From the IMG/VR virus record IMGVR_UViG_3300036770_003943, positions 1-64,000 of that record: 64,000 nucleotides of DNA. One strand, given 5' to 3'. The notes under the pieces were generated by a model. That model was given only the letters and a program-made list of their open reading frames with translations. It searched no databases and was not told where the DNA came from. A program made the translations under genes and the position numbers. This document shows, one piece after another, positions 7,154 to 40,125 of this stretch; within the stretch, counting starts at the first letter, position 1, and every line of letters begins with the position of its first letter.

Positions 7154-7176
7154 AAAAAGGGCACCTAAGTGCCCTT
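7154..7176 (-). terminator. Intrinsic terminator closing the tmRNA gene
   Basis: AAGGGCAC-TTAG-GTGCCCTT followed by T run. Confidence 0.8.
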
Positions 7177-7530
7177 GGTAAGTTTGGTAACAAGGTCTTT
7201 CCTACCCCGTCAGGCTTAAGCGGCTAGCTTAACTTCCTGATAAAAATAGTCGTCATTTGCGTCTATTTAGTTTGCTAGGATTACGTCCTTCGCCTATCGC
7301 ATCGTCTGGTCAAATACTGCATCACCTGTCGAACCTAATTCCGGCCCATCATAATCAGTCTGTATCGCCATTGACCCAATCAACTGTCCATATTGCTGCT
7401 TCTTCAGTTTTTGCCAGCAATCTTTTATGAACTCATTGATTTTCTGCCACATACAAACTCCTTATGGTGGACCGGGCGGGGAACTGCCCCCCGCGTCCAG
7501 TTAATTCTTCTTATTCCTTCATACGATGAT
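7177..7530 (-). ncRNA. ssrA: tmRNA, circularly permuted (two-piece) gene
   Basis: Acceptor piece ends ...GCGGGG-GGCAGTT-CCCCGC-CCGGTCC-A-CCA at 7465. Coding piece starts GGGCCGG at 7347 and pairs with CCGGUCC including the G3.U70 Ala identity pair. Tag frame 7260-7216 = ANDDYFYQEVKLAA*. Outer ends are approximate. Confidence 0.92.
7294..7452 (-). CDS. 52-aa ORF starting in the tmRNA intervening segment and overlapping the coding piece
   Basis: TAAGGAG directly after CCA, 5-nt spacer, ATG; MWQKINEFIKDCWQKLKKQQYGQLIGSMAIQTDYDGPELGSTGDAVFDQTMR*. Confidence 0.55.
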   Translation of the reverse strand: MWQKINEFIKDCWQKLKKQQYGQLIGSMAIQTDYDGPELGSTGDAVFDQTMR

Positions 7531-7536
7531 AACAAG

Positions 7537-7542
7537 TATTTA
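7537..7542 (-). promoter_or_regulatory. Late-type TAAATA box upstream of the tmRNA acceptor piece
   Basis: Same TAAATA motif as precedes structural genes in this window. Confidence 0.55.
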
Positions 7543-7544
7543 TT

Positions 7545-7628
7545 TTATGTAAACATTACTGCTAATACAAACATTAGCACTAGCAATGAGAATATTACAG
7601 TGGTATTTTTATTTTCCGGGTCGACCAT
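7545..7628 (-). CDS. 27-aa single-pass membrane peptide
   Basis: Manual translation MVDPENKNTTVIFSLLVLMFVLAVMFT; fills the gap exactly. Confidence 0.5.
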   Translation of the reverse strand: MVDPENKNTTVIFSLLVLMFVLAVMFT

Positions 7629-26165: not shown

Positions 26166-26633
26166 ATGACATTTCAAAGCACATCATTTGATATGAACAG
26201 CGTTATCAATAAACTACGTACTATAGCAGAAAACGGGGCTGAAAATCTAAGTGAACTAGATCCGGGCGCAGAAGTTGGCGGCCAAGAAATTGATAATGCC
26301 AGTTTTACTAGAACCATGGCAAGACTAGCAGCAATTAAAGATGCTGTAGCCGAAGAAAACTATAACGCTTTAAGGGCAGGGGTTCGTAGCTTATACATGA
26401 ATCGTCGGCCTAATCTACAACAAATGACAGCACTAATGGATCTTCTAGAAACTGTACTTAGTTACGTAGCTGAAGATAATGCTTTATTCCAAAGACTTAA
26501 ATCAGACCTAGCACAGGACAAAGCTGGAGATGTATTCCCTAATGAACCAGCTAGTACGGCAGAACCAACTGCTGGCACTGCTGCCAGCGCACCTGTTGCT
26601 CAACCTCCAGCAATGAGAGGCATGAAAGTTTAA
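26166..26633 (+). CDS. Hypothetical protein (isolated plus-strand gene)
   Basis: TAAATA box and GGAG RBS; stop overlaps the helicase stop. Confidence 0.75.
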   Translation: MTFQSTSFDMNSVINKLRTIAENGAENLSELDPGAEVGGQEIDNASFTRTMARLAAIKDAVAEENYNALRAGVRSLYMNRRPNLQQMTALMDLLETVLSYVAEDNALFQRLKSDLAQDKAGDVFPNEPASTAEPTAGTAASAPVAQPPAMRGMKV

Positions 26634-28030
26634 ACTTTCTTCAATATATTAGCTAACCGATTGCTCGAGTCCATAGTTCGCAACTGCGGCGTGGGCTCTT
26701 TTTTATCAATGATTTCCCCTGTTTCTGGATCTATTGTAGTACTGTGACGGCGTAGTCTTTCGTGTAAGATATCCACTGTAGTAGGAACCGATTCAGCATC
26801 TTCAGCTATGTCTGTTATCCTAAGGCTAGTAGTATCAAATTGTAATTCAATTTTAGTTCCCACCGCACTGCTACTGCGAGTTTTCATAAACTGTATTTGA
26901 ACACGTTGGCGCTCACGCATGGTAATACTGTTAAAAATACCAATAACATTATCCGCAGTCTGTATCTTACTAAGACCTCCTGCGATATGACTATGATCAA
27001 ACTCTACACTTTCTACAGCACCTCTATTCAACTGGCTGGCTGTACAAAATAGATAATTACCCTGTGTAGACATTGCTCTTAGTTCTTCACTTACCAATTT
27101 ATCCTTAATAAACAAGTCTGCTACACTGATCTTTTGACTAGCTGGCATCATCAAGTCTAAATAATCTACGATTATCCAATCAATCTTTTTATTATGTTGT
27201 ATTTGGAATTCTTTAATCCAACTCTTAAGATCATTGACAGTAATGCCGGCTGTGAGTTGTACTATTTGTATCCGACCTGCTGTTTTTCCTTTAAGGCGAA
27301 TCTTCATGTCAACTTCATCGATATTGCGATATATTTCTTTTGTAGCAATGCCCATGAGCATGGCATCCATACGCATACTACAAAGTCCTTCGCTGAGTTC
27401 TAGACTAAAGTAAACACCATTAAATCCAAGTTGACTCCAGTTAAGTGCGAGGTTCTGTAAGAACAAGCTCTTACCCGCTCCGCTACCGCCAGCAAAAATA
27501 TTAAGCTCACCACGATTAAAACCACCATATAATTTATCATCAATACTTTTCCAGCCAGTGCTGGTTCCTCCGTTCATATTCTTAAGTCTAGTAAGACGCT
27601 CTATGGGATCAGCATAATAGTCTGTTCCAAAGCTCTTAGGTAATCCCACACTGGTGGCATCTTTGATTATTCGTTCTACTTCTCCGTACCGCTGCTTGTC
27701 TAATAAATCAGCACTTTTTAATATGGCTTTTTCTAATGCTTTATGTCTGGCAAACTGCTCAAACTCACTGAGAAACCAATCCTTGTGTGCTTGAATTTCG
27801 TGTACAGTTAGTTCCAGGCCAGTTACTGCTTTGATCTGCTCGATAGTCGGGCAGTCACTATATTTGTTAACATAATCTTTAATAAACTCTGCTGTTTGTT
27901 GTAGACTTTTACTGAAGTATAAGGATTCGAGTACGTTCTGACAGCGGCTCAATAGATCCTTGTCACTGATTAAGAATTCTAAAAATAGTTTTTGTAAATC
28001 ATTGCTGTATTCTTTTATTTCTTCATTCAT
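26630..28030 (-). CDS. gp41: DnaB-like replicative helicase (gp41-like)
   Basis: GGSGAGKS Walker A, SLEL, IIVDYLD, TASQLNR, K.R.S; ATGA overlap with primase. Confidence 0.95.
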   Translation of the reverse strand: MNEEIKEYSNDLQKLFLEFLISDKDLLSRCQNVLESLYFSKSLQQTAEFIKDYVNKYSDCPTIEQIKAVTGLELTVHEIQAHKDWFLSEFEQFARHKALEKAILKSADLLDKQRYGEVERIIKDATSVGLPKSFGTDYYADPIERLTRLKNMNGGTSTGWKSIDDKLYGGFNRGELNIFAGGSGAGKSLFLQNLALNWSQLGFNGVYFSLELSEGLCSMRMDAMLMGIATKEIYRNIDEVDMKIRLKGKTAGRIQIVQLTAGITVNDLKSWIKEFQIQHNKKIDWIIVDYLDLMMPASQKISVADLFIKDKLVSEELRAMSTQGNYLFCTASQLNRGAVESVEFDHSHIAGGLSKIQTADNVIGIFNSITMRERQRVQIQFMKTRSSSAVGTKIELQFDTTSLRITDIAEDAESVPTTVDILHERLRRHSTTIDPETGEIIDKKEPTPQLRTMDSSNRLANILKKV

Positions 28031-28998
28031 TTGCAATACCTTTTTGCCATAAGTCGTATTTTAGTTGGACTATGTTCAACTGCTTGTAGTATACTATAGA
28101 CTGCGAACAGTCTTCCGTATTTAAGTACAGCGTCGCTTACATCTTTACAATCTTCCCATTCAGGAAAACTAGCACTCCAACCATAGTCTGCTGCTCGCAT
28201 AACCAAGTCTCGTCCAGCTAGATCCCTGTCAGGGATCACCACAGGTTCTATATTTAATTCTTCTATCAATTGTATTTGTCTTTCGCTGATATTATTACTG
28301 CCCACACTAACGCCTTGCGTAAATAAGGCGTCAAACTCCCCTTCACTGACTATGATATATTCACTATTTAAAGAAATATTGTCTAAGCCAAATACATACT
28401 CAGCCGGTGCTTTTCTTATATACTTCCTGACTTTTTCAGGAACCGTCCCGGCATATCTGGCCAGATAGCCGACTAGTTTATTTTCATAAGTATAAGGAAG
28501 AATTATGCGTTGATTCAAACCAAGATATTCATAATCTGTTTCAAGCCATACCGCCAAGTCAGATAGCTGTCTTTTTTCTAGATATTCTAATTTAACAGGA
28601 TCAGCAATTGGCCTGAACTCAAAGCCGGGATCAAAATCAGGCCAATCAGGTCGCCATTTAAATTCAGGTTCCCGCTTGACTAATTGTTCTAAGTCAGCTT
28701 GACTGAGTAGTTCTAAGGCTAGGCGTTGTATTTCGGCTTCGTCAAACCCTAGTTGCCGCATTAGCTTTCGTATCTTAAAACCCAAACTCCAACCAGGCAT
28801 CCATCCTGTTTTAAAATCACAGTTAAAACAGTGATAACTTAGTCCGCCATCTGGCTGATAGAGTATACCTCCTCTGCGTTTAGTATCTGGCCTGCTTTGG
28901 CCATTTACCACACACATGGGACAGTTTAAACTGATCCATCCTTTGGGACTAGGTTTTCCGTTTATTCTGCTTTTAAGCAGTGTTTGTAAGGCCATCAT
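28027..28998 (-). CDS. gp61: DNA primase (Zn finger plus TOPRIM)
   Basis: CPMC...HCFNC, R.I.P, EGEFDA, PDRD.AG, KD..D. Confidence 0.9.
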   Translation of the reverse strand: MMALQTLLKSRINGKPSPKGWISLNCPMCVVNGQSRPDTKRRGGILYQPDGGLSYHCFNCDFKTGWMPGWSLGFKIRKLMRQLGFDEAEIQRLALELLSQADLEQLVKREPEFKWRPDWPDFDPGFEFRPIADPVKLEYLEKRQLSDLAVWLETDYEYLGLNQRIILPYTYENKLVGYLARYAGTVPEKVRKYIRKAPAEYVFGLDNISLNSEYIIVSEGEFDALFTQGVSVGSNNISERQIQLIEELNIEPVVIPDRDLAGRDLVMRAADYGWSASFPEWEDCKDVSDAVLKYGRLFAVYSILQAVEHSPTKIRLMAKRYCK

Positions 28999-29840: not shown

Positions 29841-30209
29841 ATGGCAGATTATCACAACATACTCAACAAGTTCCCGTTTTTGTGTTTATGTAAGACAGGG
29901 GAAGAAGAACTTATAGGAATAATGCAAAACTACAGTAATACTCTAGTTAGTATCTACGTCTATAATTTTTTAAACACTAAAGAAGACAAACAACTATTCT
30001 TAGAATACGGCGATGAATGGTGGTGGCAAAGCAATCGACAATTACCGATAAACTTGGTAGTAGGTTTAAAATTTAAAAAACTTAGCTATTGTCTAAGAAC
30101 CTACAATGTAAAAGATTTTGAACTGGTACAAGGTGAACCAGTAAGTCTACAAAATATTATTACTAAAAGAATTAAACGTCGTCAAATACAACTAGTTCAG
30201 AAACTATAA
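29841..30209 (+). CDS. Hypothetical protein (isolated plus-strand gene)
   Basis: TAAATA 6 nt before ATG; WWWQSNRQLPIN motif; overlaps the end of mini-DnaE. Confidence 0.8.
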   Translation: MADYHNILNKFPFLCLCKTGEEELIGIMQNYSNTLVSIYVYNFLNTKEDKQLFLEYGDEWWWQSNRQLPINLVVGLKFKKLSYCLRTYNVKDFELVQGEPVSLQNIITKRIKRRQIQLVQKL

Positions 30210-30760
30210 CTAAGACGGTTCATCTGTAGTACAATAGCCATGGCGTAGCCAATCGCATGGCTCTTTTTAAAGCTGTAAACATCATCGGTTTTAACCCATA
30301 CTTCACGTTCAATTACCGACCAGGGTTGATTTATTAAATGTCGTTTGCCTGGTCTTATCACAGCCAGTACCATAGCTAGTTGTTCTATACTTCGTGGTCG
30401 CATTTGTCTTACAATGTCCGAATGATTATGGATGTGAAACAATTGCTCAATAATTTCCTTATGCTCTAACAACTCCCATTGAGGTTCAAATTCAAGCAAA
30501 TGATCTATTTGTTCGTTACTGGTAAAATCGCAGTATATACCTACATTTAAAAGATCTATCTTAAACCATCCTTTATCTTCAGCTTGTTTGTAATCAAGAG
30601 TAGCCATACTAGTAAATGGGTTAACAGGAGCTTCATGGAAATAAACTCCTGTGTTATGCTTACGAGGTTTATTATCATCCAAAATCATAGCAGGAACATG
30701 TGGTATTATCTTTAGTATTTGTTCTCGATCAGCAAAATCAATGTCAATATCTGTGCTCAA
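30197..30760 (-). CDS. dnaE: Minimal DNA polymerase III alpha (family C) catalytic-core protein
   Basis: DIDIDF, KHNTGVY, FKIDLL, P.S...LA.VLA.IRPG and SFKKSHA.GY motifs in DnaE order within 187 aa. Confidence 0.8.
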   Translation of the reverse strand: MSTDIDIDFADREQILKIIPHVPAMILDDNKPRKHNTGVYFHEAPVNPFTSMATLDYKQAEDKGWFKIDLLNVGIYCDFTSNEQIDHLLEFEPQWELLEHKEIIEQLFHIHNHSDIVRQMRPRSIEQLAMVLAVIRPGKRHLINQPWSVIEREVWVKTDDVYSFKKSHAIGYAMAIVLQMNRLSYSF

Positions 30761-31053
30761 TGTAAGGTTCCTTTGTTTTCAGGAAAAGGATAGATATTTT
30801 TACGTCGATCATAGATAGCACTGACGATTTGTTCGTAATCTTCTTCGTTTAACGCAGTTCTATATATGCTTAGAGCCATGGTGGTCATTATACTGGCCAC
30901 TGCCAATGGATCATGGTGGTCTAAACTTTTGTTAATCATGGCTAGAAAGTCATGATATAGATCTTCTGTACTTTTATTAGACATTATTTTTTCTAACTTT
31001 TTTATTAGCACGATTTTCTGCTGTGTACAATCGCTGTTCAAGTTGATGTACAC
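30757..31053 (-). CDS. Hypothetical protein
   Basis: ORF with GTLH acidic/His tail; start may be the internal Met (MSNK). Confidence 0.6.
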   Translation of the reverse strand: MYINLNSDCTQQKIVLIKKLEKIMSNKSTEDLYHDFLAMINKSLDHHDPLAVASIMTTMALSIYRTALNEEDYEQIVSAIYDRRKNIYPFPENKGTLH

Positions 31054-31210
31054 GCTTTAGTAGTCGTTGAAATGTTTCCGCACTAGGTACGTATATTAAA
31101 TTATTATCAATTTCTAATTCTACCATACCGTTTAGAGTACGTGCCTTAGGAGTATTTCTTCTATCTTTAAGTAAAGCTGGCACTGCTTGTTGACTTGAAT
31201 ACTGACTCAT
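30977..31210 (-). CDS. Hypothetical protein
   Basis: ATG at 31210 overlaps the upstream stop. Confidence 0.6.
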   Translation of the reverse strand: MSQYSSQQAVPALLKDRRNTPKARTLNGMVELEIDNNLIYVPSAETFQRLLKRVHQLEQRLYTAENRANKKVRKNNV

Positions 31211-31887
31211 TTTATCTCCGCTTGATTGAAAACCGTTTGAACCCATTCGGCATCTTCACGTTGTCGCAATACTTTTGCTCTCCAACTGTTGGGTTCCATA
31301 TAGTCTATAAGAGTTTGTATTTGACCTGGTTCAAATCTATCTATTAATCTACTACCCTGATCTGTGGCAAATGTACACCAAGGACTAATTCGACCCATTC
31401 TTATATCCTGTACAGCCTGGGCAGTATCCACTGATTGAAAATAATTCTGCCAGTCTTGTTTGGTTCTTTCTGCCCATGCTTTCATATTTAACACACTTCG
31501 TTCGATTGCCCGTTCTACTGATTCCTTTTTAGTTTGCTCCTTTACATAGTGATCGAACACAGCATCGCTGGTCCATCTTCTCATAGGAACACTATTCATA
31601 ATTAAAAATCGAACAAAATCTTCTCCTTTAGCTAGATTAAGATCAATTATGTACTTGGCCAATTTCATGAATCCTTTGTACAAACTATTGCCAACAAAAT
31701 CTTCATAGCTTTTTTCTTTTTTAGCATTAGGCATAGTAAGTTTACGAAACAGTAACCAGCTTTGAAAAGCTATACGATTTTGAACCTGATCTTTATCCAA
31801 TATTCTACGTTTGGCTTCGCAAAGATGCGAAGTTAATGTAGATTCTCGCGAAAATTCTTTTTTACAATACCTACACAGGTAAGTCAT
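31207..31887 (-). CDS. Hypothetical protein with N-terminal C2H(C/H)-type zinc finger
   Basis: YLCRYCKKEFSRESTLTSHLC. Confidence 0.7.
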   Translation of the reverse strand: MTYLCRYCKKEFSRESTLTSHLCEAKRRILDKDQVQNRIAFQSWLLFRKLTMPNAKKEKSYEDFVGNSLYKGFMKLAKYIIDLNLAKGEDFVRFLIMNSVPMRRWTSDAVFDHYVKEQTKKESVERAIERSVLNMKAWAERTKQDWQNYFQSVDTAQAVQDIRMGRISPWCTFATDQGSRLIDRFEPGQIQTLIDYMEPNSWRAKVLRQREDAEWVQTVFNQAEIK

Positions 31888-32431
31888 TAGCAGCAGCAAT
31901 TATATCTTTGTCTTTAATTTGAAACTGATCGAGAATGTCCCGAGCATGTGACCTTGTATAGGATCTAAACAATAGATCTAACTCCTGTTCATTGAACTCA
32001 GGATTCCTATCAGCTAACCAATTACGAAAAGCGTTGGATTTAGTTCGTCGACCTTTTCCAGGCTGTATATATGGGTGTTTAACTGATTGTCCAATACCAA
32101 CCATACTCATTAGCTTCCATTGTAGGTCGGGGCAGTGTTTAAGGTCGCTAAAGTTAGTGTTAACTAGCTCGTTGGTCATTATCAGGTAATGTTCTATGAT
32201 GTCATTATTGGCACTTTCAGCACTGCTTAAATAACGCATAACTAACCATGGACTAAAACCTTTAGTTTCTTCGGTATTTAAACTTTGATAAAAATCTTTT
32301 TTTCTAGTGTCAGCAGCTGGTAAGACACGCTTAAACATATCTAACATAGGTGCTTTCTTTTTCTTATCCTTGTCAGGGAAGCTCTGCTTGCTCCAGTTAG
32401 TTACATCAGTTAGATCATATTTTTCTTTCAT
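31871..32431 (-). CDS. gp62: Probable clamp loader small subunit (gp62-like)
   Basis: FSPWLVMRYLS motif and H..LQW.L....G pattern. Confidence 0.6.
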   Translation of the reverse strand: MKEKYDLTDVTNWSKQSFPDKDKKKKAPMLDMFKRVLPAADTRKKDFYQSLNTEETKGFSPWLVMRYLSSAESANNDIIEHYLIMTNELVNTNFSDLKHCPDLQWKLMSMVGIGQSVKHPYIQPGKGRRTKSNAFRNWLADRNPEFNEQELDLLFRSYTRSHARDILDQFQIKDKDIIAAANDLPV

Positions 32432-36838: not shown

Positions 36839-38941
36839 TTAGAATACTTTGTTAAACATTACACCAGCACCAGTAGCAGTATTACCTGCTTGCCCTGCTA
36901 CATTATATTGTCTGGCCAGGTTCACTGTCAATCTTGCGTTTTGATTATTAATCACAGTGTAACCTAATACTAGATCCAAAGGACGAATATCTGATTTCAG
37001 ATTCACAATTTCCTTAGTTACAATAGGATCCGCACTAACTGTACCATCAGCCAATTCAGTAAACTTGTAATCTGTTACTGCGCTCACAGTAGCTGAACCA
37101 TTCTTAATGGCAACCGGACTAACTAAGCTAAGACTAACTTGATCTCGAACACTATCTTTGAATACTATATTGTGATGCGCTATACCAACCTTCCAAGTCT
37201 GGCTAGTAATAGCCCCATTGAATTGGACAAGACTACCACTTAGGTTACTGACCTGCGTAACAGCCAAACCATAATGGCCAAACAAACTTGTATCACCAAA
37301 CTGTCGGGCTAGCCCTAATTGGGCATAACTAGTGCTGCTGTCACCATAGGCTAGACTACCTGCTCCGTGATTACCCAAAAAGCCTGAACGTTCAGACAAG
37401 CCTCCGAGTTGGAAACTCGCTGTAGTTGAACCCATATAGTAATCTACTTGGTTAGCTAAACCGTTATCAGACTTCATTAATTTTACTGAGTAGTCAGAGC
37501 CTGTGGGCAATACAACTTCACTATAGTTATAGGGTGTTAAGGCTAACCAAGCACTGCCGTATTGGTAAGTTTGTAGTTTATTTACAGCAGTAGCTTTAGT
37601 CAAATCAACTGCGTAATGACGCCCAATTTCATCTAAAGTCATTGTATTCTTTAATACATAACTGTTGGATAATCCTGTGTTAACTGAATTTACTGTACCT
37701 GTTCCAGCAATGCTAGAACCTGCTACTAGCCCTTGACTAGGCATGGCCATTTTTAATGTACCTGTTGGCTTAGTTGCCTGGCTGAAGTTGACTAACCCAT
37801 ATCCATAAACTTCATCAACGCCAGGGGCACCTAAATCTGTAGCAGTAGTCTTAACTAGACTGACAATCTGTGCCGCACTAAGTTGTGGCCAAACCTGTTT
37901 GATTAGTGCAACACCCCCACTGACATAGGCAGCGGCCGGACTTGTACCAGAGACATAACTTGTCACACTTCCTGGAATAATCTGGTTTGGAGTTGCGGTG
38001 GGAATATTTTCTCCTGGTGCTACTACGTAAAAATCTTTTACACTGTATTTGTCGGCACAAACTGTGCCTTGTACGTCAGAACAAAAGCCCCCAGCCCGGT
38101 TGCTAAAACTGCTAATTACATTCTTGTTATTCACACTACCTACAATCAGCATCCTGCCTCCTAACATAAGGTTACCTACTGAATCGGTTTTAGTAGCATA
38201 AGCACCCGGATATTGGCTATAAGCCAAGCCTTGGTTGCCTGCCGCGGCAACTATTACCATGGTCTTACTAGCATTGGCAAAATTTGCCAAGTCTTGGGCC
38301 GAGTTACTGTATAAGTCTGTATACGGAGCAGGAGCCTTGTATACTCCTGGAGACATTTTTATTACTCCACGCTGAAACGCAGTGTCATAAGTGGCGCCTA
38401 AACTTAGATTTGCTACAGTAGCACCGTTAGCTTCGGCCCAAGTTAATGCTTGATTGATGCCGTTTGTGCTAATACCATTAGTAACAGGAACCCATTTTTT
38501 CTGGTAATTATTCCAAACTAACCCTTGTGCGACCTGAGCCAGTAATAACTTAGCTCCAGGTGCTACGCCTACCGTTCCAATATTATCCAACTTACCTGCC
38601 GCCACTGCCGCCATCTGCGTTCCATGTGTACTCCAGCTAGCTGTGAAGAAAAGATTTGAACGAAAATTATTTGGATTAAGGCGAGTGTTTTCAGCTACAA
38701 TTTCACTAAAGTTTCTAAATCCTAATACCTGACCTCTAAGGTCATTATGAGTAATATCAAACCCACTGTCTAGTATAGCAATCTTAACACCGGTTCCAGT
38801 AATACCTCGACTCCATGCTTCTGTTACACCGGTTTGGTTTAACACCGATGTGCTTAGTGATTCTTTATTTGCCTGAGCTAGCACACTTTGACTAATTGCC
38901 AAAGCTATCGATACGCTAAGAACTTTTGCTTTAAATTTCAT
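36839..38941 (-). CDS. Secreted subtilisin-like (S8) serine protease with C-terminal beta-rich domain
   Basis: Signal peptide; AILDSG (Asp), HGTQMA (His), AAAGN, SGTS.AA..VSG (Ser); terminal Phe. Confidence 0.92.
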   Translation of the reverse strand: MKFKAKVLSVSIALAISQSVLAQANKESLSTSVLNQTGVTEAWSRGITGTGVKIAILDSGFDITHNDLRGQVLGFRNFSEIVAENTRLNPNNFRSNLFFTASWSTHGTQMAAVAAGKLDNIGTVGVAPGAKLLLAQVAQGLVWNNYQKKWVPVTNGISTNGINQALTWAEANGATVANLSLGATYDTAFQRGVIKMSPGVYKAPAPYTDLYSNSAQDLANFANASKTMVIVAAAGNQGLAYSQYPGAYATKTDSVGNLMLGGRMLIVGSVNNKNVISSFSNRAGGFCSDVQGTVCADKYSVKDFYVVAPGENIPTATPNQIIPGSVTSYVSGTSPAAAYVSGGVALIKQVWPQLSAAQIVSLVKTTATDLGAPGVDEVYGYGLVNFSQATKPTGTLKMAMPSQGLVAGSSIAGTGTVNSVNTGLSNSYVLKNTMTLDEIGRHYAVDLTKATAVNKLQTYQYGSAWLALTPYNYSEVVLPTGSDYSVKLMKSDNGLANQVDYYMGSTTASFQLGGLSERSGFLGNHGAGSLAYGDSSTSYAQLGLARQFGDTSLFGHYGLAVTQVSNLSGSLVQFNGAITSQTWKVGIAHHNIVFKDSVRDQVSLSLVSPVAIKNGSATVSAVTDYKFTELADGTVSADPIVTKEIVNLKSDIRPLDLVLGYTVINNQNARLTVNLARQYNVAGQAGNTATGAGVMFNKVF

Positions 38942-38982: not shown

Positions 38983-40062
38983 CTATGCTTCCTTACGCTT
39001 AAGGATTGTAGTTTCTGCGAGACGTCTCCAATTGCTAGGACTAAGTTTACGTAAGTCCGCAATCTTAAGCACTGTACGCAAACTGAGTTCACGCAAGCGA
39101 CTACGCTCTGTCCAAACAAAGTCAACAATTTCCTGATCTGCACCATCTTCAAAATTGTACGAGTTCAACATGCCATCACGCACAATCTGCTTGATACGCA
39201 AAAACTTGTCACGCATAGTGTCAAGTGTAAGATCCAGATAGTGACAACGACTTTCTAATGCGTCCAAATGGTCCTTGAGTTTCTTGCTACGAACATGCTC
39301 AAACTTAATGTTAGTAATAAAAATCACACTACCTTTGAACTCAAACTTGTCGGGCACACCTTCACGACGCAACATGCTGGAGTCTGTGTTCCAACTAATG
39401 GTACGCTTCTTGCTTGAATCCAATGCTGCCTTGAGGATGTTAAGTGACAAGTCGTCAAGCAAAATGCTGTCGCAGTCATCAAACACTAGAACATTGTTTT
39501 TGTCTGCGTATTGAAACAACTTGCAGTAGAGTCCAATAGCACTCATAGCACCTTTGACTACTTCAAAGCGATTTTTACGCTGAGCCATTTTGTCAAAGAG
39601 GCTGGCCTGTTCAAGTACCTTCTCAACACCAAAACTCTTGCCAACTCCTGGGGGACCTGACACAATCATTGCACGAACGGCACCTGTAGTTGCACCTTCT
39701 GCCATTTCATCTAGAATGTCAAAACGCTCACGAATTCGTTCAATCGCTTGTTCTTCTGTTTCTGTATATGTTGCGGGTTCGACTGCCTTGAGCATTTGAA
39801 AGACATTATCGTCTTCTTTGTTAGCACGATTGCGTTCACTGTCTGACATGTCTACGATACTTTGTCCGCTCAACGTAATATCCTCACGTGAATTAATTTT
39901 GATTTTGACTTCTGCTGGGAAGCCAGGAAAGTTTCCTTCGTTAGCTACCTTAATAACAAAGCCACCTTTTGCGCTATCTTTGATATCGCCAAGTAAGCGA
40001 AAAGTTTGACCACGAACATCTATGTTACGATAACTGCCACGAAGAACGGTAACTTGAGCCAT
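38983..40062 (-). CDS. AAA+ ATPase
   Basis: GPPGVGKS Walker A, VLVFDDCD Walker B, VIFITN sensor 1, LESRC arginine finger. Confidence 0.88.
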   Translation of the reverse strand: MAQVTVLRGSYRNIDVRGQTFRLLGDIKDSAKGGFVIKVANEGNFPGFPAEVKIKINSREDITLSGQSIVDMSDSERNRANKEDDNVFQMLKAVEPATYTETEEQAIERIRERFDILDEMAEGATTGAVRAMIVSGPPGVGKSFGVEKVLEQASLFDKMAQRKNRFEVVKGAMSAIGLYCKLFQYADKNNVLVFDDCDSILLDDLSLNILKAALDSSKKRTISWNTDSSMLRREGVPDKFEFKGSVIFITNIKFEHVRSKKLKDHLDALESRCHYLDLTLDTMRDKFLRIKQIVRDGMLNSYNFEDGADQEIVDFVWTERSRLRELSLRTVLKIADLRKLSPSNWRRLAETTILKRKEA

Positions 40063-40125
40063 TTTCAAAACTCCTGTTTTGTTTAACTATAGAGCTAGTA
40101 TAACACTCTAGCCAATTTGTGTCAA

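Follow-up and report, generated by a model that had tools for sequence, protein, structure and literature searches.

The 187-amino-acid open reading frame (ORF) at positions 30197 to 30760 on the minus strand of the DNA analysed here is most probably (probability roughly 0.8) the C-terminal unit (C unit) of the minimal DNA polymerase III alpha that group 2.2 jumbo phages, those with a T4-like core, encode in two pieces, and would dock with a separately encoded N-terminal unit (N unit) to give a DNA polymerase of about 350 amino acids. The stretch under study, in the following called the window, comprises positions 1 to 64,000 of the IMG/VR record IMGVR_UViG_3300036770_003943, a single linear contig of 231,776 bp with 38.5% G+C, which CheckV rates as about 65% complete. 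For group 2.2 jumbo phages, the split minimal Pol III alpha was described computationally in 2021 by Iyer, Anantharaman, Krishnan, Burroughs and Aravind (Viruses 13:63, PMC7824862), so that the novelty seen in the ORF by the original prediction does not hold. The kind is known, and the ORF is a further, unannotated member of it from an uncultivated phage. Beyond Iyer et al. 2021, a literature search returned no biochemistry or expression work on the N or C unit. Added here are residue conservation, the superposition of a whole model, the 1:1 co-occurrence of both units, their predicted docking and the conserved gene blocks at both units.

The ORF itself proved to be real, and its strand, which was absent from the original prediction, can be added to the description. 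The TTG start overlaps the stop of a small upstream ORF (TTGA), and the 3' end shares 13 nt with a convergent 122-aa gene. In the alignment the start position matches that of homologues, whose proteins open two to three residues before DIDIDF. The five Pol III alpha motifs quoted earlier were all found in the 187 residues and in the order then stated, namely TDIDIDF (residues 3-9), KHNTGVY (34-40), KIDLLNV (67-73), PRSIEQLAMVLAVIRPG (122-138) and SFKKSHAIGY (163-172). The ORF, its start signal and the motif elements are located as follows.

30197 to 30760, minus strand: C unit ORF of the split minimal Pol III alpha, 187 aa, TTG start
30769 to 30773, minus strand: AAGGA, resembling a Shine-Dalgarno sequence and placed 8 nt upstream of the TTG, taken from the nucleotide sequence itself
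30734 to 30751, minus strand: DIDIDF, residues 4-9, forming the first beta strand and containing D4, D6 and D8 (E. coli D401, D403 and D405), aligned to PDIDIDF of M. tuberculosis DnaE1
30641 to 30661, minus strand: KHNTGVY, residues 34-40, return strand of the hairpin replacing the thumb, with H35 and G38 invariant
30545 to 30562, minus strand: KIDLLN, residues 67-72, with the third carboxylate D69 (E. coli D555) and K67 (K553), aligned to KFDFLG by hhalign
30344 to 30355, minus strand: RPGK, residues 136-139, finger motif equivalent to E. coli RPGP (639-642), with R136, P137 and K139 invariant, aligned by phmmer, profile and hhalign
30245 to 30271, minus strand: FKKSHAIGY, residues 164-172, equivalent to E. 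coli GFNKSHSAAY (755-764), with H168 at the position of H760 and with Y172, aligned to FNKSH of M. tuberculosis DnaE1

Judging from the topology and the superposition of the whole model, KHNTGVY probably corresponds to E. coli KHAGGV (510-515). H760 is the steric-gate residue of the E. coli enzyme. E. coli Pol III alpha has been described as having a steric gate (PMC8485763).

Conservation was examined in 198 non-redundant homologues of 37-80% identity. The catalytic Asp triad, which had been described as retained, consists of D4, D6 and D69 and is identical in 198 of 198 sequences; variation of the triad among homologues, put forward beforehand as evidence that would count against a DnaE assignment, was looked for and did not occur. 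Across the homologue alignments D4, D6, D8, K67, D69, H35, G38, R136, P137, K139, H168 and Y172 are invariant. The family comprises 3569 homologues at E<=0.001, of which the 120 listed are 185-199 aa long; over the homologue sets inspected, lengths range from 185 to 221 aa. As had been expected, the ORF is shared with related large phages: tblastn revealed the C unit in 96 isolated phage records, and among the matches listed all are jumbo phages or fragments thereof, for example PA5oct-like and RaK2/121Q-like phages, Atu_ph07, Phosso and XacN1. The identity to any isolate is at most 50%. Closest among long relatives are the JGI contigs Ga0574185_000007 (335 kb) and Ga0485267_0000005 (233 kb) with C units that are 73-76% identical.

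The likeness of the 187-aa protein to DnaE exceeds chance. With the single sequence, Pfam returned DNA_pol3_finger alone and below threshold (E=0.088), while phmmer against the PDB gave three collinear sub-threshold stretches on M. tuberculosis DnaE1. The match to phrog_11778, annotated as 'DNA polymerase', covers residues 3-184 at E=5.7e-66. The HMM comparison to DnaE that had been proposed gave significant results in two forms: a 35-sequence family profile run against the PDB found DnaE1 with four collinear stretches (E=1.7e-4), Pol III alpha making up nine of its ten matches, and hhalign placed residues 40-139 on E. coli DnaE 529-642 at E=3e-4. The AlphaFold2 model of the C unit is confident and compact (pLDDT 89, pTM 0.75), and the top 15 Foldseek hits of this model are all C-family polymerases. 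VIA-align superposed 186 of the 187 residues on Taq Pol III alpha 460-837 with Z 9.5 and also placed the model on E. coli 399-780, M. tuberculosis DnaE1 418-806 and PolC 970-1294. Over these four enzymes Z ranges from 9.5 to 6.3, with the first unrelated fold at Z 3.4. Profile, hhalign, Foldseek and superposition results thus back the DnaE descent claimed earlier.

In the model superposition the 187 residues trace a DnaE span of about 380 residues, most of the finger inserts being skipped. The DnaE thumb of about 70 residues is reduced to a tight beta hairpin in the AlphaFold2 model, with strands at residues 21-28 and 31-41. The finger Arg residues of E. coli RRAMGKK, which hold the triphosphate in DnaE, have no obvious counterpart in the C unit.

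At its N-terminus the C unit opens exactly at the DxD strand, and the GRGS (GS-motif) nucleotide-binding element is absent from it. In E. coli DnaE a GRGSGAGS loop and helix (residues 361-393) precede the DxD strand. This loop and helix bind the incoming nucleotide in DnaE, and the GS/NTP-binding element is a defining part of the Pol-beta-like fold. A counterpart of this part is encoded separately in related phages. With Pfam PF07733, one gene above the curated cut-off was detected in each of Phosso, PA5oct, Atu_ph07, RaK2 and XacN1, distant from the C unit. The N units of these five isolates, which represent the family phrog_11127, are 169-182 aa long, end with ...VWGVGRGSSVASY...EFL[RKNE]-stop and are collinear with E. 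coli 330-393.

N units were found in five of five isolated phages and in three of five IMG/VR relatives (G002, G003 and G004), one of which, G002, has 364 kb and is 100% complete; the two relatives in which no N unit was found are contigs of only 29-32% completeness. The distance between both units is about 180 kb in G002 and G003, whose genomes are complete or nearly so, and at least 43 kb in PA5oct. The tblastn counts of C units and N units in isolates are equal by genus (Escherichia 34/34, Pseudomonas 11/11, Salmonella 8/8, Erwinia 8/8, Xanthomonas 4/4). Neither fusion nor adjacency of the units was seen: within flanks of 6-10 kb, the other unit was absent from all 80 N-unit loci and from all 87 C-unit loci.

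The stop of the N unit and the start of the C unit fall within a loop or linker of about seven residues in E. coli DnaE. No intein halves were found at the split site: N units end at EFL[RKNE]-stop and C units start with M-x-(x)-DIDIDF, with no extra residues on either side. Since this leaves no room for intein halves, the association of both units must be non-covalent. The view of the ORF as a self-sufficient mini-DnaE has to be given up, because the GS-motif NTP-binding half of the palm is not part of it and forms a separate protein of about 170 aa in the relatives.

The lack of PHP, thumb, most of the fingers, clamp-binding and OB domains in the ORF was described correctly, and it extends to the whole genomes of complete relatives. 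Pfam gave no PHP or HHH_6 match in the 100% complete G002 or in four isolates, and the complete relatives carry a family B polymerase and both units together with no PHP or HhH/beta-binding domain. It follows that the other DnaE domains are truly missing rather than encoded elsewhere. An ordinary split DnaE, with the missing domains placed elsewhere in the genome, had been weighed against the original prediction; this turned out to be right for the N half of the palm in the relatives and wrong for the other DnaE domains, which are encoded nowhere.

The formation of a heterodimer from both units is predicted by structure modelling. The cognate units of G002 served as the pair; the C unit of G002 shares 54% identity with the window protein. 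An ipSAE of 0.91 was obtained in three runs, compared to 0.00 for the best of three controls; the benchmark mark for ipSAE is reached by 58 of 80 solved complexes and by 2 of 110 mismatched pairs. In the predicted interface, residues 2-9 (DIDIDF strand) and 165-168 (KKSH) of the C unit face residues 122-135 (GRGS loop) and the C-terminal EFLR of the N unit, which is how an intact DnaE active site is arranged. The docking score may stem from the predictor's memory of solved intact DnaE structures. It would accordingly be read as a sign that the pair resembles an intact palm rather than as proof of binding.

In the record itself, the search for complementary split subunits that had been suggested gave a divided result. 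A T4-like family B polymerase, also to be searched for according to the earlier plan, is present as an 880-aa ORF at record positions 197611 to 200253 with PF00136 at 198022-199227. In the 231,776 bp, about 65% of the genome, no N unit was detected by a GS-motif regular expression, phmmer with E. coli DnaE, a 5-sequence HMM, tblastn, genome search or phrog_11127, and Pfam gave no match to a PHP domain or PF07733 in IMGVR_UViG_3300036770_003943. Three candidates for missing pieces were dismissed. A weak tblastn match at window positions 7432-7515 ('W.TGRG', three of five N-unit queries) lies inside a tmRNA gene and is due to chance. The upstream 98-aa ORF (30757 to 31053) has no GS motif and no family matches, and its family occurs in 8 of 175 loci at varying positions. 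For the convergent 122-aa gene and a 230-aa zinc-finger protein, considered as thumb or finger pieces, PDB profile searches showed no DnaE similarity.

In other phages the N unit belongs to a conserved block that comprises a tail-like protein (69 of 83 loci), a protein of about 76 aa (83/88), the N unit, a phrog_14844 protein (82/86) and a gp31/GroES-like co-chaperonin (80/82). None of these five genes was found in IMGVR_UViG_3300036770_003943. Since the record is about 65% complete and the entire five-gene block is missing together with the N unit, the block probably lies off-contig, in the unassembled third of this phage's genome, and we infer an N unit as partner for this particular phage, too. 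Its position could not be predicted from synteny with the complete relative G002, which is too rearranged, and none of the 80 IMG/VR N-unit loci has close neighbours in common with the record. The phrog_14844 protein, which carries a VNARGDxLGPGG motif and is encoded directly downstream of the N unit in the 82 of 86 loci (for example L095:1234-1473, minus strand), may act with the N unit as an additional partner, or be just a syntenic neighbour. Outside the window, record positions 133305 to 133670 (minus strand) hold a MazG-like gene that shares 71% identity with the copies which G002 and G003 carry about 600 bp away from the N unit. Here it is located in another neighbourhood, beside a 430-aa protein with a putative ligase-like start, which indicates that the region is rearranged.

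The C unit resides in a conserved gene order of UvsW helicase, p166, p186, p230, C unit, the opposite-strand 122-aa gene, a 'virion structural protein' of about 260 aa, gp61-type primase and DnaB/gp41-type helicase. The neighbours discussed here are located in the window at the following positions.

26630 to 28036, minus strand: DnaB-like (gp41-type) helicase, by Pfam and PHROG
28027 to 28998, minus strand: gp61-type primase, by Pfam and PHROG
29841 to 30209, plus strand: convergent 122-aa gene (phrog_11637), whose product has a WWW..NR motif that is invariant and a C-terminal tail that is basic
31207 to 31899, minus strand: 230-aa p230 (phrog_11058), whose N-terminal C2H2-type zinc finger (C9, C12, H25, C27) is invariant

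The genes for primase and helicase lie 1.2-3.6 kb downstream of the C unit. Among loci with sufficient flank, a primase is encoded within 6 kb downstream in 65 of 67, the convergent gene in 79 of 81, p230 upstream in 80 of 82 and UvsW in 46 of 52. The conserved order may only reflect a frozen order of the replication module and is weak evidence for a tie to priming. The ORF had been assigned to a primase/helicase/clamp-loader cluster, of which primase and DnaB-like helicase were confirmed and the clamp loader was not; the nearby AAA+ protein (38983 to 40068) gave a match to phrog_1250, a PHROG without functional annotation, and a weak DnaC-like match only. Besides gp41-like and gp61-like proteins, the window also encodes UvsW, UvsX, UvsY and gp32-like proteins. 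For the convergent phrog_11637 protein, Pfam, PHROG and PDB profile searches gave no recognisable fold or family. The family profile of p230 matches eukaryotic-type zinc-finger proteins in the PDB at E=3.8e-10.

Further features of the window were noted in passing. The small ORF at 30757 to 31053 on the minus strand, which probably spans only 30757 to 30984 (about 75 aa), adjoins the C unit on its upstream side in the closest relatives alone, and its homologues elsewhere occupy other sites, one of them in G003 at a distance of 1.3 kb from the N unit. Within the region for replication and recombination, positions 36839 to 38941 on the minus strand encode a 700-aa protein that contains a complete subtilase domain (Peptidase_S8, E=2.7e-40). 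A tmRNA gene of the permuted (two-piece) type is located at 7174 to 7574 on the minus strand, in an ORF-poor gap of about 600 nt between minus-strand genes. It scored 108.7 bits with Rfam RF04321 (E=2.9e-20, full model) and 68.8 bits with alpha_tmRNA RF01849, both above gathering, and was not detected by ARAGORN. The tmRNA type, taken together with the best isolate matches of the C unit, which are Sinorhizobium and Agrobacterium phages, hints at an alphaproteobacterial host.

From these data the following mode of action can be proposed. The C unit carries that half of the palm which binds metal and primer/template, together with the finger core, contributing the D4/D6 strand, the D69 strand, RPGK, and KKSH with the steric-gate His and the Tyr that would line the nascent base pair. 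The N unit (about 170 aa, phrog_11127, PF07733) would supply the GRGS nucleotide-binding loop and its helix. Docking of both would complete one palm of Pol-beta fold, about 350 aa in total, and the resulting enzyme, devoid of proofreading, clamp-binding and OB domains, would work beside the family B replicase. That group 2.2 jumbo phages also carry a T4-like family B polymerase was reported before (PMC7824862). Synthesis that is templated and dNTP-selective is favoured by the fact that the steric-gate His, the Tyr and the RPG motif have been kept, and templated dNTP polymerisation is accordingly the reaction we would expect of the two-piece enzyme. With no thumb, clamp-binding element or RRAMGKK arginines, processive synthesis is doubtful, which suggests short-patch synthesis.

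For the cellular role one can only speculate about the extension of primers next to the primase, the filling of gaps or repair; repair, or else synthesis of one strand, was suggested by Iyer et al. (PMC7824862). A more specific proposal would make the heterodimer the smallest known C-family core, template-directed and extending or handing off primers with the adjacent gp61-type primase in a family B replisome that is archaeo-eukaryote-like in all other respects. We regard this as a tentative idea that is rather less probable than its opposite. If true, it would represent a phage analogue of the division of labour between DnaE3 and PolC or between Pol alpha and Pol delta.

Other explanations of the ORF have to be compared with the two-piece polymerase. 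Both units together might be active in something other than templated polymerisation, as a tailing enzyme or as a maker of signalling or decoy nucleotides in phage-host conflict. Many such activities are supported by the Pol-beta fold (PMC11646218), the thumb, clamp-binding and most finger elements are lost, and the phage already has a full family B replicase. Nevertheless, the invariant His168, Tyr172 and RPG motif that have been retained are the contacts of DnaE to template and nascent base pair, and the gene is part of a replication module with primase, helicase and UvsW, the primase being nearby in nearly all loci. We therefore consider a non-templated activity unlikely.

Still less probable, and in our opinion very improbable, is a catalytically competent mini polymerase or nucleotidyltransferase made up of the 187-aa protein alone. 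The missing GS/NTP-binding element, the presence of an N unit in every complete relative and the prediction that the N unit buries the first strand as well as the KKSH face all contradict this explanation, which can draw on a complete and conserved ORF with all three carboxylates. It could also refer to the lack of an N unit in the 232 kb of this record; the record is, however, only about 65% complete, and the whole N-unit block including the gp31-like co-chaperonin is missing as well. An inactive remnant, meaning a decayed DnaE fragment with a structural or regulatory role, would be in line with the extreme deletions compared to DnaE and with a Pfam result limited to a sub-threshold finger-domain match, yet it is the least credible explanation in view of the triad, K67, H35, R136, H168 and Y172 being invariant in homologues of 37-80% identity, the tight length of 185-199 aa among the 120 listed of 3569 and the confident, compact AlphaFold2 model.

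Understood as one half of a two-piece polymerase, the protein belongs to a family that shows how little of a bacterial replicase keeps an active site, about 350 residues on two chains compared to more than 1100, with the chain break running through the catalytic sheet itself. The family offers a natural minimal model for the working and the origin of C-family polymerases. It also raises the question of the purpose of a second, bacterial-type polymerase in a T4-like replisome.

In comparison to known systems, the window protein agrees with the C unit of Iyer et al. (phrog_11778) in its length of about 190 aa as a protein of its own, in its start at the DxD strand, in accompanying a T4-like family B replisome and in the lack of any other DnaE domains. 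Homologues of that C unit occur in PA5oct, RaK2, Atu_ph07, XacN1 and 121Q-like phages, from which the window copy is not different in kind; it differs in originating from an uncultivated phage, in its identity of at most 50% to isolates and in having no N unit on the contig. With the bacterial Pol III alpha enzymes (DnaE1, DnaE2, DnaE3 and PolC) the C unit has in common the Pol-beta-like palm with the catalytic Asp positions and, in the fingers, the motifs RPGP and GFNKSH with the steric-gate His. The bacterial enzymes possess PHP, thumb, full fingers, beta-binding/HhH and OB domains and carry the N-terminal half of the palm on the same chain, whereas the phage C unit is devoid of PHP, beta-binding/HhH and OB and finds this half on another polypeptide. 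The cyanobacterial split-intein DnaE (dnaE-n and dnaE-c) is likewise a C-family polymerase derived from two distant genes. There, a full-length DnaE of over 1000 aa results from trans-splicing by intein halves, which the phage units do not have. In Bacillus subtilis, DnaE3 extends RNA primers and then hands off to PolC. A possible analogy of the phage enzyme to B. subtilis DnaE3 and to eukaryotic Pol alpha would be functional only, as a second, non-proofreading polymerase beside the main replicase, in this case encoded near the primase.
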